Assembly (NCBI GenBank): GCA_016748015.1
Contig: JAAOMT010000372.1
Coordinates: forward strand, 434,074 to 498,000
Direction: 5' to 3'
Source: Geosiphon pyriformis uo1
Taxonomy: Eukaryota > Fungi > Glomeromycota
DNA: 63,927 nt
This document shows, piece by piece, positions 4,590-36,982 of this stretch. The notes under the pieces were generated by a model that was not told where the DNA came from, ran no database searches, and saw only the letters and a program-made list of their open reading frames with translations. Positions within the stretch are counted from its first letter, which is position 1, and each line of letters opens with the position of its first letter. The position numbers and the translations under genes were made by a program.

Positions 4590-4690
4590 ACCTGTTCCCT
4601 TTGAATGAGCCTAGAACACACAATTCGGGATGGATTATAACACATTAATAATAGGCAATACTAAGCATTGCTATGCAACACCTATTATTC
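4590..4690 (-). ncRNA. Candidate omega-RNA (Fanzor guide scaffold) remnant
   Basis: Overlaps and follows the Fanzor relic's stop codon. Perfect 9-bp stem AATAATAGG (4647-4655) / CCTATTATT (4681-4689) encloses GCAATGC-TTA-GTATTGC. A second weaker stem is TGTTC (4593-4597) / GAACA (4614-4618). The position matches TnpB/Fanzor omega-RNAs. Confidence 0.4.
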
Positions 4691-5770
4691 CCTGCAGGAC
4701 CAAGGCTCCATTAAGCAATGCCCGGAGAAAGATCCCCGAGCACCATTTTCATCTCTATCCATAACAAGCTTCCAATTACGGCAGTTGTACAAGTTTTTGA
4801 GATATAGGTCTCATTTTTGATAGTAACTCGGACTCCCCAATTCTTCTGCTTTACTGAAGAAATCGATAGTGCGCCCTTCTAACTGTTTTTTGTGTGATTT
4901 TTTCAATTCATTGTCTCCGATACCTCAAAGGAAGGAATGACAATAGCATCAAATTCGTGGTGGGACAGCTTTTCAGTCTGCAAGTGTAAGATCTTTTGAT
5001 GCGTGCACCCAATCACCTTTTTTAATCTTTTCTTACGTTTTGAGGAGGTATTTAATTTATTTTTCTTTGAGCAAAGATCATCAGAGATGAACAATACGAC
5101 CGATGTCACTAGAGCCTATTTTTTCTACATCTTTTGCCCGGAATACCATGTAAATGGATTACGAATGTCAGGAACTATGGAACAAAGCTATCCGCTTTGG
5201 TTTCGCGGAGCTGTTTTTGCATCTTGTATATTCAGACAAACTTCTGTTCATTAGTTTTTGTGATAGCAAGTGAGCTTTTTTTTTTTCAAAGTGAAGAGAT
5301 CATGGTATATGTTTATTCTTAATAATAAAGGAAAAGAAAATGGGATAAAAACGACATAAATAATGATATAAAACAATTTTAAAAACAAAAAAATGTAAAA
5401 AATTTATTATCTTTACCCTTGTGTCGGTGTGCATATGTATGCAGTATATTGATGGAGTTTGAAGGTAAGATACATAGAAATGAACTTTGCAAAATTCTGA
5501 GGACGAATTTTTATGGTGTTATGCAGTGCCTTACGGAGATTGAAGAAAAAAAGATGATGTGTTGATGCACCTTTTGTTATCGCTGTACATTACGTTTAAT
5601 AACTTCCTTTGGGGCAAACCAATCTATCCTGTGATTTTGGCAGGAGCTGATGGCTAAGTTACCTCTTAAGAGCATTGCCAAGACGGACGATGGCTTTGAA
5701 ATTATTTTTTTTCACCTGAGCATGCTTTGATGTTAATTCGTGGTTCTTCGCGATTCAAATATTTTTATTT
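4671..5770 (-). pseudogene. Decayed Fanzor (TnpB-like RNA-guided nuclease), copy A
   Basis: Minus-strand fragments in order across frameshifts: PKEVIKRN; NLRKALHNTIKIRPQNF; LCSIVPDIRNPFTWYS (degenerate RuvC-I); KIGSSDIGRIVHL; KRKKRLKKVI..HQKILHLQTE; HEFDAIVIPSFEVSETMN; AHYRF; KAEELG; VRVTIKNETYISKTC; CRNWKLVMDRDENGARG / IFLRALLNGAL (RuvC-III). Confidence 0.88.
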
Positions 5771-33646: not shown

Positions 33647-35273
33647 TTTCAGTGGAATTTAAAAATTGAAGCTAATCAAAAATATTTAAATTGATTCGAA
33701 ACGATGCTTCTCTCGCTAAATAAGATAAGCAGAAAGTGATACGCAAGTTCAAGGGTTTTTAATTATCGAGCGTTTTTATGAATTAAAAAGGTTGTAAGGC
33801 TCCCTCTGAACAGAAAAAGAGCTTGCTTCAATTAATGAAGAAAAATTATCTAACTAACCGAGAAGTTTAAACTTGGAGTATTTATATTTTTCTCGTTCTA
33901 AGGGAAAACTGTGGCGTCATAGGTTGAATAATTACGAATAAACAAATGCTCGATGATTCTCGATTCATTTCGGATAAATTGCGGCAATTCAAATGAATCA
34001 TCGGATAAACTAATATATACGCAAAATGATCATTAATCAGCTTTTTGTTTGAATAGATACCATTGCGCTGATTAAACCAAATTATCGCATATTCGAGAAT
34101 CCTTGGTTAATCAATGTTTGTCATCCTACAGTGACATACTTTTCATTGGTTTCTTGTATGAATTCGGCAACTTGAAATTTATAAACCAAAAATAACCAGC
34201 CCCATAAGTAGTAGAAAATATGTTCAAAAAAATATGCGAATTACTAGTGGCTAACTATTTGAGAAATTTGCTGTATTTTATAATGAAACGAGTGTATTTT
34301 ACGAAAGAAAAAGTAAATTAGTGAAATATTTTTAATATAAAAAGAATTAGGAAAATATGGAGAATTGAATAAAATTGCAAATTGATTTTTTATTTAACAT
34401 TCATTCTGAATTTTAATATTTTATAAAAATTAAAAAATAAAAATAAAAATAAAAATAAAAAACTATTAAATCATTAGGACACCAAAAAATTATTGCATAA
34501 TTATTTATTTTTAATAATTTTTATTTTCGTTATCAAATTTATATTGTACGAATATAGTTGTTGGTTGAACCACACCGTGCATTTTAAAAAAAAATTATAA
34601 AGAAATATTTTTTATAAATATTTATAATAACATTATAATTTTTAAATTATTAGTGTTATTTTAATTGTTTATTATTTATTATAATATTTTTTGAAAATGT
34701 AATTCAAATCAATCATTAATCTGTAATCATTAAATTGCTTATTGATTTGATTGTTAATTGGATTTTTAATTTAATTGATAAGTTAATTTTAATATTATGT
34801 ACAAAAAAAAATTAATCAGATTTTAAATAAATAAATAAATAATAAAATATATTATATTGATCTTTAATAAACCATAAACATAAAATATTTTGTATTGTTT
34901 ATTGTTCTTTTCTGAATATTTTATAAGTAAATAATTATTTTACAAATTATAATTAAATATTTATGCACTTGAATGTCAACATTATTACAAAGTTTACTCT
35001 TAAATATAAAAAATTTATCAAAAAACAAAGTTTGATTAAATTTATTAATAAGTTTTATTTATTGAGCTTACATGTTAATTAAAAAATCTTAATACCACTT
35101 TTGTTATGTTAAAGTTAACTAATTTCTGATTCTTATTTTTCATTATTTGAAATAGTTTGCACAATTTGTAAAATAACTTTATCTTTTTTAAAATCTATAA
35201 TTTTAAAATTAATGTTTTAAACAATTGAAAATTTATGCATTATAAAATTTAAAATAGCATTACAATTAATAGA

Positions 35274-36690
35274 TTAAGCTTCGTTCTGGATAATAAAACG
35301 GATTCCCAAATTACTCGATTTTGGTGATCAAAAGTGGTTGTAAGCAACAATGCACCCAACAAAGCATTTTCCACGTAATCTTTTTTCATATTGCGATTCA
35401 CCATGCCCGACACTTCAAAAAGAGGAATGAAAATGGCATCAAATTCGCGGGTAAAGCATCTAACTGATTCCGGTGAATTTCACTTTGCAGATGCATGACT
35501 TTTCGCCGAATCCAAAAAATCACCTTATTGAGTCGCAGAAACATTTTATTCTTACGGTTTGAGAAGGATTCTACTAACTTATTCTTTTGGAAGATCTCAT
35601 CTTCCAAAAGAATGTTCATCAATCGTGTTTACCCCTTTTGTGGGAGATTATCGTAAAAAGTGTACAGACGCCGAGATCAATGGAGACTGCATGAACAGAG
35701 CCATCCGCTTGAGTTTCGCGGAACTGTTGTTACGTCTCGTATACACAAGCAAACTTCCACTGGTTAGTTTTGCGAGAGTAGGTGAGCTTGCCATCCGACA
35801 TTATATTGTAAAGAACGGACCACCTATTATTATGCCTCTTTTCTTGGAAATGAGGAGGCCACAAACCATGCTTGTCATTACCCAGATTGGTGGTAGGCTT
35901 ATAATAATGTGTCTTAAGCATCGACGGATTATGAAGATGAGTGATATAGAAGCGGTTCTATGTGGCTTTCGAAAAAGTTTGTCCATGAATTGTCATTGTT
36001 TGTCGCGGATCTTTTGGAGATCGAAATGATAGTGTGCCAATAGACCTTGCCGATTCGTATTACCCCTAATTAATTTTCCCCTAGCAATCAATGCTTCATC
36101 GATTGCCTCATCAATAATATTCGCGAAGCTTTACCGTGCATACCTGAAGCAACATTCCGAGATATACAACAGTTCGCATGAACTTGCACTCGCCTTATAT
36201 TGCAACTTTTCCGAGCTCTTTGTCTTCGTGTTCATTAGCGTCTTTTTCTGCCCGAGTTTATGCAAAGCTTAAGTTTATCTTTGATGGATTGAGGCTTTGT
36301 CGAAGCCTGTTATGATAAGCCGATATGAGGATTTTTAGTATAAAAGCTGCGGTGTGGCCTCTAGTAGACAGTATTATAAGCAAATCTCGTCGAGCTCAAC
36401 CACCGCTTCAAGAGCTTCTTTTGAAGATGGTTCCGATATACCTTGATTGATAATGTAGTTTGAGAGTATCTTCCATCTAACATTTGCGACGAGCTGCTGT
36501 CTGCTCTTTTCGCCTGTTCTGACGCTCTTATTGATGATATACAGCAGAGAAAGACTGTGTTGATGAAAAAAACATTTTCTGAGAGTTTATGCTCGTCAAA
36601 GAGAACCAGGAGTTTTGCAAAATGGAGACACGGGGTAGAGGTAACCTTTCTTTGGTAGCAGAGGTGGCGGTGATGGTATCAGCATTTGAA
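35274..36690 (-). pseudogene. Decayed Fanzor (TnpB-like RNA-guided nuclease), copy B; C-terminus missing
   Basis: In order on minus: LQNSWFS (NSWFS at 36600-36614); SIKVYRNHLQKKLLKRWLSSTRFAYNTV (TnpB-type N-terminus, ~36367-36450); ANIIDEAIDEALIARE; FRSPKDPRQTMTIHGQTF; KLTYSRKTNQWKFACVYE; AVSIDLGVCTLFT (RuvC-I Asp at 35676-35678); RRKVMHLQSEIHR; FTREFDAIFIPLFEVSGMVNR; KMLCWVH; GIRFIIQNEA* ending at 35274. Confidence 0.9.
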
Positions 36691-36982
36691 TTTATTATTT
36701 ATTATAAAGTAAAATTTCAAAGTATTATTTTCGGGATTTTAAATCTGATAAGAATTTATTAGCAAATTAGGCATTATTAATAATTGATCGCCGACGGAAT
36801 AAATAAAATTCATCCAAGTTTGATCAATTAAAGATTTCCCCTTTTGTTCTTTGATCAAGATTTTTCAAAAAAAAAAAAAAAACTTATTTGTGAACTCTAC
36901 ATGACTCAACTTTCGAAGGAAAAAAATACAAAGCAGCTTGAACAATTTTTTTCACCTTCAAAGACAGAGGAATAATAAAATT

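Follow-up and report, generated by a model that had tools for sequence, protein, structure and literature searches.

A decayed IS607-type element in the Geosiphon pyriformis genome

The window analyzed here, a stretch of 63,927 nucleotides (nt) of contig JAAOMT010000372.1 from the glomeromycotan fungus Geosiphon pyriformis uo1, contains at 35275–36800 of the minus strand (5′ limit approximate) a decayed, 3′-truncated mobile element, hereafter copy B, that holds relics of a transposase gene, tnpA, and of a Fanzor2 nuclease gene. Coordinates are positions in this stretch unless a locus is named, and copy B was delineated by homology and by alignment to a family consensus. An older relic of the same family, copy A, lies on the same strand at 4628–5277, corresponds to consensus positions 1239–2027, and includes the zinc ribbon, RuvC-III, and the right-end terminus. 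A preliminary description of this DNA had correctly recognized copy B as a TnpB/Fanzor nuclease relic with its RuvC-I aspartate and alternative glutamate. We conclude, with a probability of roughly 0.93, that copy B is a dead copy of a ~2.0-kb eukaryotic IS607-type transposon (IS607EU in Repbase terms) that carried both tnpA and Fanzor2.

Homology between copy B and more than 25 other copies in the genome (128.3 Mb, 792 contigs) spans 35275–36687, almost exactly the limits of 35274–36690 given previously. Aligned to the consensus, copy B falls into three segments (36755–36722, 36687–36625, and 36627–35275) that map to consensus positions 17–51, 94–152, and 360–1795. The edge at 35275 is sharp, being the exact start of 13 alignments, with AT-rich DNA beyond it, in agreement with the abrupt stop reported earlier. 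This edge is the truncation point: the consensus runs on to about 2029, and at this place matches to the zinc ribbon domain PF07282 adjoin other copies. Missing from copy B are the last ~250 nt of the element, which comprise the zinc ribbon, RuvC-III, the right end, and the predicted guide-RNA region. The left end of the element is recognizable at 36722–36755 and, as judged from 11 copies aligned at their 5′ ends and from the sequence of copy B, probably extends to about 36790–36800; the left-end feature with its subterminal TGCTTAnnAATGnnTATCA repeats is accordingly placed at 36722–36800, its outer limit being approximate.

Along the minus strand, the long Fanzor2 frame opens with an ATG at 36683–36685 (MLIPSPPPLLP...); the refined family consensus has the same methionine right after a stop, and the N-termini of intact relatives are similar. 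KKGYLY, at 36635–36652, is a tnpA relic, the lead-in to the catalytic-serine motif YARVSS, as identified from family pieces with YARVSS and from matches to the NCBIfam IS607 transposase model. An internal deletion of ~207 nt (consensus 153–359) has its junction at 36625–36627, where consensus segments 94–152 and 360–1795 abut; the same gap is seen against copy L003. The deletion removed the catalytic core of tnpA from the serine codon on, together with the PYWN..LW helix of the Fanzor extension, and left the start of tnpA (KKGYLY) and its C-terminal third (INTVF). Past the junction lies NSWFS (36600–36614), a hallmark of the N-terminal extension of Fanzor2 and pro-Fanzor proteins, recognized by the offset of SWF across loci and its invariant tryptophan, and read in frame +1 of the bases that encode KLVVL, a strand of tnpA. 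As a conserved N-terminal motif of intact relatives, it confirms the earlier placement of NSWFS at the N-terminus. The bases at 36543–36566 are a dual-coded fossil: one frame reads SSTQSFSA, the LPSTxSxSA motif of the Fanzor extension, and a second reads INTVF (36550–36564), from the C-terminal helix of tnpA.

The TnpB core starts with IKVYRNHLQKKLLKRWLSSTRFAYN (IKVY..LQKKLLKRW..TRFAYN) at 36373–36447, which matches Pfam HTH_OrfB_IS605 (E = 0.0023) and lines up with the beginning of the core in intact relatives. Frame translation then gives KTNQWKFACVYET at 35733–35771, ahead of an in-frame stop (35730–35732) at the boundary of VYET and QQFRETQAD. The RuvC-I aspartate (35676–35678) sits in SIDLGV: the DPG of the family pieces, invariant in relatives, has become DLG, with the aspartate kept and the proline mutated. 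At the canonical RuvC-II position, copy B reads EFDAIFIPLFEVS (35408–35446), which is without the usual catalytic glutamate arrangement, and the alternative RuvC-II glutamate (35280–35282) lies in QNEA (35277–35288), six residues before the zinc finger in complete copies. All motifs quoted in the preliminary description (NSWFS; IKVY..TRFAYN; KTNQWKFACVYET, a stop, and QQFRETQAD; SIDLGV; EFDAIFIPLFEVS; QNEA) are thus on the minus strand where they had been placed. Reading through copy B requires at least six changes of frame and meets one in-frame stop; by its sequence, copy B is inactive today.

Assignment of the nuclease to Fanzor2

The nuclease was analyzed with a profile (A3) of real in-frame pieces of many copies, spanning RuvC-I to the C-terminus. 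Its best match was 9B0L, the structure of the mimivirus Fanzor2, ApmFz2 (PMC11832414), at E = 1.5e-27, with Cas12f/TnpB next at 1e-14 or weaker; the best hit is therefore of the TnpB type and not a non-TnpB protein. Fanzor1 (8GKH) gave no sequence match at E ≤ 0.01 and was absent from the 50 best fold matches. Family pieces carry SIDPG (the DPG form of RuvC-I), DRDENGA, and NEAYTSKTC, in which the alternative glutamate precedes the zinc finger by six residues. DPG, the alternative glutamate at this position, and DRD are signatures of the Fanzor/pro-Fanzor clade (PMC10711439, PMC13565253). The zinc ribbon PF07282 has 68 matches in the genome, many of them abutting copies of the repeat right past the point where copy B stops, and two family pieces score 51.8 and 45.1 bits for it; this domain and RuvC-III are absent from copy B because of the truncation at 35275. 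An AlphaFold2 model of an intact relative, P0002, matches the fold of ApmFz2 (Z = 22.8) better than that of ISDra2 TnpB (Z = 19.3). We therefore assign the family to Fanzor2, and by analogy its nuclease would have been RNA-guided.

The 5′ part of the element encodes an IS607 transposase

The element opens with ~500 nt of coding sequence for an IS607 serine transposase. In another copy, a 162-residue piece of the 5′ part matches Pfam Resolvase, and three pieces from three copies tile positions 49–142 of the NCBIfam profile NF033518 (E = 1.8e-13, 2.7e-5, and 0.013), the best scoring 50.4 bits, under the whole-protein cut-off of 110. When the PDB was searched with tnpA pieces of the family, catalytic domains of IS607-family TnpA were returned, down to E = 5.9e-7, and YARVSS is still readable in several copies. 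The genome contains 30 matches to NF033518, many beside family copies, none of them intact and none over the cut-off; one other match covers profile positions 3–165. In the three intact relatives that were scanned, tnpA, including its MerR-like domain, scores 154.8, 154.0, and 134.9 bits against the curated cut-off of 110.

The preliminary description saw no serine recombinase and left the mobilizing element unnamed. Since the 5′ part of the element is an IS607 tnpA, with NF033518 matches at E = 1.8e-13 and 2.7e-5, that statement was wrong, and the element is of the IS607 type; the transposase had been overlooked because it is encoded in another frame of the DNA for the Fanzor N-terminus. In a live element, the serine recombinase would cut and join double-stranded DNA without inverted repeats. 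By analogy with TnpB and Fanzor2, the nuclease would use a guide RNA from the right end to cut the empty site, whereby the element would be retained.

A dispersed family with one main burst

With copy B as query, at least 69 matches at 67–80% identity were found in the genome, and with a complete copy at least 85, both counts being lower bounds; over both queries identities are 65–80%, and the copies lie on more than 40 contigs. The earlier view of a once-abundant family is thereby borne out. Complete copies define a repeat unit of about 1.95–2.05 kb with defined ends. The left end, whose outer limit is known within about 10 nt, consists of repeated TGCTTAnnAATGnnTATCA motifs, and the right end terminates in ...ACAATCCATCCG. 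Comparison of the left-end start, taken from the 11-copy alignment, with the right-end terminus of complete copies showed that the two are not reverse complements. Fanzor1 genes are carried by cut-and-paste and other eukaryotic transposons (Mariner, hAT, Helitron, and others) that have terminal inverted repeats and target-site duplications; the present family shows no terminal inverted repeats, and its unit contains tnpA and the nuclease only. The two ends share a direct motif of ~20 nt, TGCTTAGTAATGCTTATCAGG and TGCTTAGTATTGCCTATTATTG (for example at L043:1530–1600 and L043:3440–3500), and these shared motifs are plausibly binding sites for the transposase.

Copies A and B match each other at E = 9.5e-14 in blastn and 2e-10 in tblastx and align to one consensus, so that they belong to one family, as had been proposed. 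Copy B is 88% identical to the consensus at aligned positions, with a Kimura two-parameter distance (K2P) of 0.133, and 83 of its 169 substitutions are C>T or G>A. Copy A is at K2P 0.236. Most copies fall at 0.087–0.138, and two others, at about 0.22, are near copy A. From these distances, A and B go back to separate insertions of the family, that of A in an older wave. The stop codons of A and B stand at differing positions, in accord with the differing lesions described previously. The two copies are not equally old. It had also been suggested that A and B together allow a near full-length reconstruction of the ancestor. They do cover most of it (B consensus 17–1795, A 1239–2027), but positions 153–359 are absent from both, and other copies are therefore needed for a full reconstruction.

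No intact copy was found among 72 loci of this genome, the longest in-family open frame being 228 amino acids. The family underwent one main amplification burst in the fungal genome and then died out. Copy B has subsequently lost ~207 nt inside tnpA and its last ~250 nt and accumulated at least six frameshifts, one stop, and 13% drift, mostly C-to-T and G-to-A.

Several further observations concern the copies and their surroundings. At 35330–35410, copy B and the copies L032, L043, and L058 are open in the same wrong frame after a ..FEVS.. motif, which may go back to a frameshift present in a master copy that was itself defective. Another Fanzor2 family in the genome, represented by L031 (G000:C701:384126–387323), L033, and L034, is less decayed and has 24 matches at 65–89% identity. 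Its C-terminal halves contain single in-frame stops only and share 35–60% protein identity with the main family; no intact copy was found among its loci, of which the C-terminal halves were seen. The window is AT-rich (GC 14–38% per 2 kb). The 300 nt abutting copy B are unique sequence, and ~310 nt past its truncated end, at 34580–34965, lies a dispersed AT-rich repeat with ~50 weak matches at 66–80% identity.

Intact relatives and phylogeny

Among 1.84 billion representative proteins, 993 matched at E ≤ 1e-30. Identity to the consensus core is 70% for P0001, 59% for P0002, and 52% for P0003 and P0151. In the tree, the fungal consensus is sister to P0002, P0003, and P0151 (support 99), inside a clade of 15 rows (support 99) that contains no named prokaryote. 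The best named bacteria reach 41–45% identity over at least 240 amino acids, with Nostoc outside the 12 best. A search of bacterial genomes and viral contigs with narrow patterns (alignment A4) returned no relative; bacterial loci were recovered with an alignment of the intact relatives (A5), and here cyanobacterial relatives are numerous, Nostoc among them.

Intact relatives are 580–650 amino acids long and have an N-terminal extension of ~190 amino acids, with the motifs PYWN..LS..LW.P, NSWFSF, and LPSTPSxSA and a lysine-rich stretch. The fungal consensus carries the corresponding motifs in the frame that is +1 to its tnpA-like frame.

tnpA is nested inside the nuclease open reading frame

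In six of seven eukaryote-like loci, an open transposase of 233–259 amino acids lies in frame −1 of the nuclease open reading frame (ORF). It is contained wholly or almost wholly within the first ~200 codons of that ORF at L073:3916–4614, L075:1–705, L076:280–1002, L078:2943–3683, L079:277–1005, and L080:262–1002, and at these loci the nuclease frame is stop-free and has the invariant SWF. The same frame −1 arrangement, with tnpA inside the first ~200 nuclease codons, was found in all 47 bacterial loci among L081–L160 with open tnpA and tnpB; they come from cyanobacteria, Chloroflexota, Pseudomonadota, and others, and overlap by 332–728 nt in a constant relative frame. Several intact copies (L099, L102, L106, and L109) belong to the culturable Anabaenopsis elenkinii CCIBt3563. 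Since tnpA is nested one frame off, the same DNA encodes the transposase and what would be the N-terminal extension of the nuclease.

The coding status of the overlap has to be judged against the alternative that the nuclease starts at the core methionine and that the open frame upstream merely reflects codon bias or a constraint at the nucleic-acid level. Gene callers and NCBIfam models indeed give TnpB a length of about 390–430 amino acids, P0003 (463 amino acids) begins at the core methionine, and conservation of one frame forces partial conservation of the other. However, the nuclease frame has no stops over the 175–242 overlapped codons, compared with 5–18 in the third frame, and is stop-free in all 53 loci with intact tnpA; when synonymous codons of tnpA were shuffled at 22 loci, the probability of obtaining no stops ranged from <0.0005 to 0.049 per locus. 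SWF is found at a constant distance from the serine codon in ~47 of 52 loci, and the underlying tnpA codons are NTG|GTT in 51 of 52, so that synonymous positions in tnpA are fixed at the place where Trp-Phe is required in the extension. The tryptophan of SWF is invariant in an alignment of 64 sequences, as are the catalytic Asp, Glu, and Asp. At L077:172–2007, an intact nuclease ORF of 611 amino acids coexists with a tnpA frame full of stops, and the extension is open and retains its motifs; it seems to have been maintained there on its own.

Structure prediction also bears on this point. The AlphaFold2 model of P0002 has a mean predicted local distance difference test score (pLDDT) of 71 and a predicted template modeling score of 0.71. 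Its leader (residues 1–83) is disordered, and the extension contains islands of structure, a helix at 90–98 (pLDDT ~92) and a strand at SWFSF (pLDDT ~72). The fold match to ApmFz2 (Z = 22.8, root-mean-square deviation 4.2, 416 residues aligned) starts from residue 84 of the model and residue 53 of the chain, whereas those to TnpB and Cas12 all begin near residue 190; these ranges denote the first and last aligned residues only. In cryo-electron microscopy, residues 53–130 of ApmFz2 form an extra N-terminal domain (PMC11832414). The predicted extension islands of P0002 likely superpose on this domain and correspond to it.

Taken against these data, a non-coding overlap appears unlikely. We consider it probable that, throughout the pro-Fanzor/Fanzor2 lineage, an N-terminal extension of ~180–240 codons is encoded by overprinting in frame +1 of tnpA and would be translated as part of the nuclease; it would include the counterpart of the extra N-terminal domain of mimivirus Fanzor2. 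The nested arrangement has probably also been conserved from several bacterial phyla to the eukaryotic copies, with copy B as its fossil, in which NSWFS and tnpA remnants occupy the same bases. The overlap of tnpA and nuclease is not mentioned in the Fanzor2 structure paper, Yoon et al., a 2026 review, Altae-Tran et al., or the IStron preprint, nor was a mention found by word searches; one survey states that some IS607 elements have partially overlapping ORFs, and no more than that.

Comparison with known systems and alternative origins

The closest known systems are the eukaryotic and viral IS607-type elements with Fanzor2 (IS607EU), among them ISvMimi of Acanthamoeba polyphaga mimivirus, which encodes ApmFz2. 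These and the fungal element are units of ~2 kb without apparent inverted repeats that combine a serine-recombinase tnpA with a TnpB-like nuclease, and the nucleases share DPG, the alternative glutamate six residues before the zinc finger, DRD, and an N-terminal extension absent from TnpB. ApmFz2 is the best match by sequence (E = 1.5e-27 with the family profile, 8.8e-43 with the relatives) and by fold, the fold alignment showing about 19% identity. The fungal family differs in its glomeromycotan host, in the number and state of its copies (dozens, all dead, against a few live ones), and in a tnpA with no detectable MerR-type domain; the comparison of nesting presented here covers the eukaryote-like and bacterial loci. 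Bacterial pro-Fanzor IS607 elements (Yoon et al. 2023, PMC10711439) have the same catalytic signatures (DPG and the alternative glutamate), tnpA in frame −1 of a nuclease ORF of 500–680 amino acids (47 of 47), and SWF at the same offset. They differ from the fungal family in the sequence of the core (41–45% identity over at least 240 amino acids) and in their separate clade in the tree, and they are without the long Ser/Pro-rich and Lys-rich leader that precedes the structured islands in the eukaryote-like relatives. Fanzor1 (SpuFz1, 8GKH) is likewise a eukaryotic RNA-guided TnpB-like nuclease with a rearranged RuvC-II glutamate, but it is larger and has no match to the family among the sequence hits or the 50 best folds.

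This last comparison bears on a reading akin to that of the preliminary description, in which copy B is an orphan Fanzor1-like relic captured by a eukaryotic transposon and lacking a transposase of its own. Such a reading would suit the lack of a separate transposase ORF beside copy B, the nuclease motifs that alone emerge when copy B is read in a single frame, and a repeat unit barely longer than one long ORF. It is very improbable given that an IS607 transposase, intact in relatives, is read from another frame of the 5′-most 500 nt, that Fanzor1 matches neither by sequence nor among the best folds, and that the element ends are not inverted repeats. Hardly more credible is a direct transfer of bacterial pro-Fanzor IS607 DNA, from a Nostoc symbiont or an endobacterium, into the fungal nucleus with no transposing fungal family. 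Pro-Fanzors are mostly cyanobacterial (PMC10711439), and many cyanobacterial relatives were found here, Nostoc included; yet the dozens of copies dispersed over more than 40 contigs, with a burst-like divergence of 0.09–0.14, speak against it, as do a consensus core 59–70% identical to P0001 and P0002 versus 41–45% to the best named bacteria, Nostoc being outside the 12 best, and the position of the family in a well-supported (99) clade of 15 rows without a named prokaryote. An ancient bacterial transfer of the family's ancestor is possible. That copy B lies within integrated giant-virus DNA is also a very improbable explanation, although the nearest solved relative is from a mimivirus and Fanzor2 is enriched in viruses (PMC10530073): family copies are scattered singly among unrelated flanks, the flanks of copy B, in which viral hallmark genes were not searched for, consist of unique AT-rich sequence and a dispersed AT-rich repeat unrelated to it, and the scan of viral contigs with the narrow patterns of the family found no relative.

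Several points weigh against the reading of copy B as a dead IS607-Fanzor2 transposon with a nested tnpA, or lessen its force. No piece of copy B reaches a curated family cut-off, the best scores being 17.8 bits for HTH_OrfB_IS605 and 14.9 bits for OrfB_IS605, and its assignment therefore goes through homology to better copies. The family consensus is a rough majority consensus with insertion and deletion errors, made for mapping copies and measuring divergence. Rfam gave no guide-RNA match on one complete copy or on copy B, which is without the right end; other copies have a clearly delimited, conserved right end. In the tnpA pieces of the family, profile positions 1–48 are unmatched and a MerR-type DNA-binding domain cannot be detected; this domain has been either lost or altered beyond detection by decay; the consensus tnpA N-terminus is, moreover, ~25–30 residues shorter than in the relatives. 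The copies that spread may therefore have been non-autonomous, using a transposase supplied in trans. Finally, translation of the extension is inferred, as are RNA-guided cleavage and the mode of transposition; what the data show is the anatomy of the element, its family membership, copy number, and decay, and the nesting of the two genes in relatives.

Significance

As a member of the IS607-Fanzor2 kind, copy B is an ordinary dead one, and this kind is known. It is junk DNA, yet it documents in a glomeromycotan fungus an IS607/Fanzor2 family that was once prolific; the literature yielded no relevant report linking Fanzor to Glomeromycota or to arbuscular mycorrhizal fungi. The main interest lies with the IS607-Fanzor2 kind rather than with copy B, namely with a transposase nested out of frame in a nuclease gene. 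If true, this nesting accounts for the coding location of the Fanzor2-specific N-terminal domain and means that transposase and nuclease are coupled in their evolution and in their expression. Many database TnpB models of this clade may then be ~130–200 residues short, which would matter for the cloning of these nucleases as genome editors.

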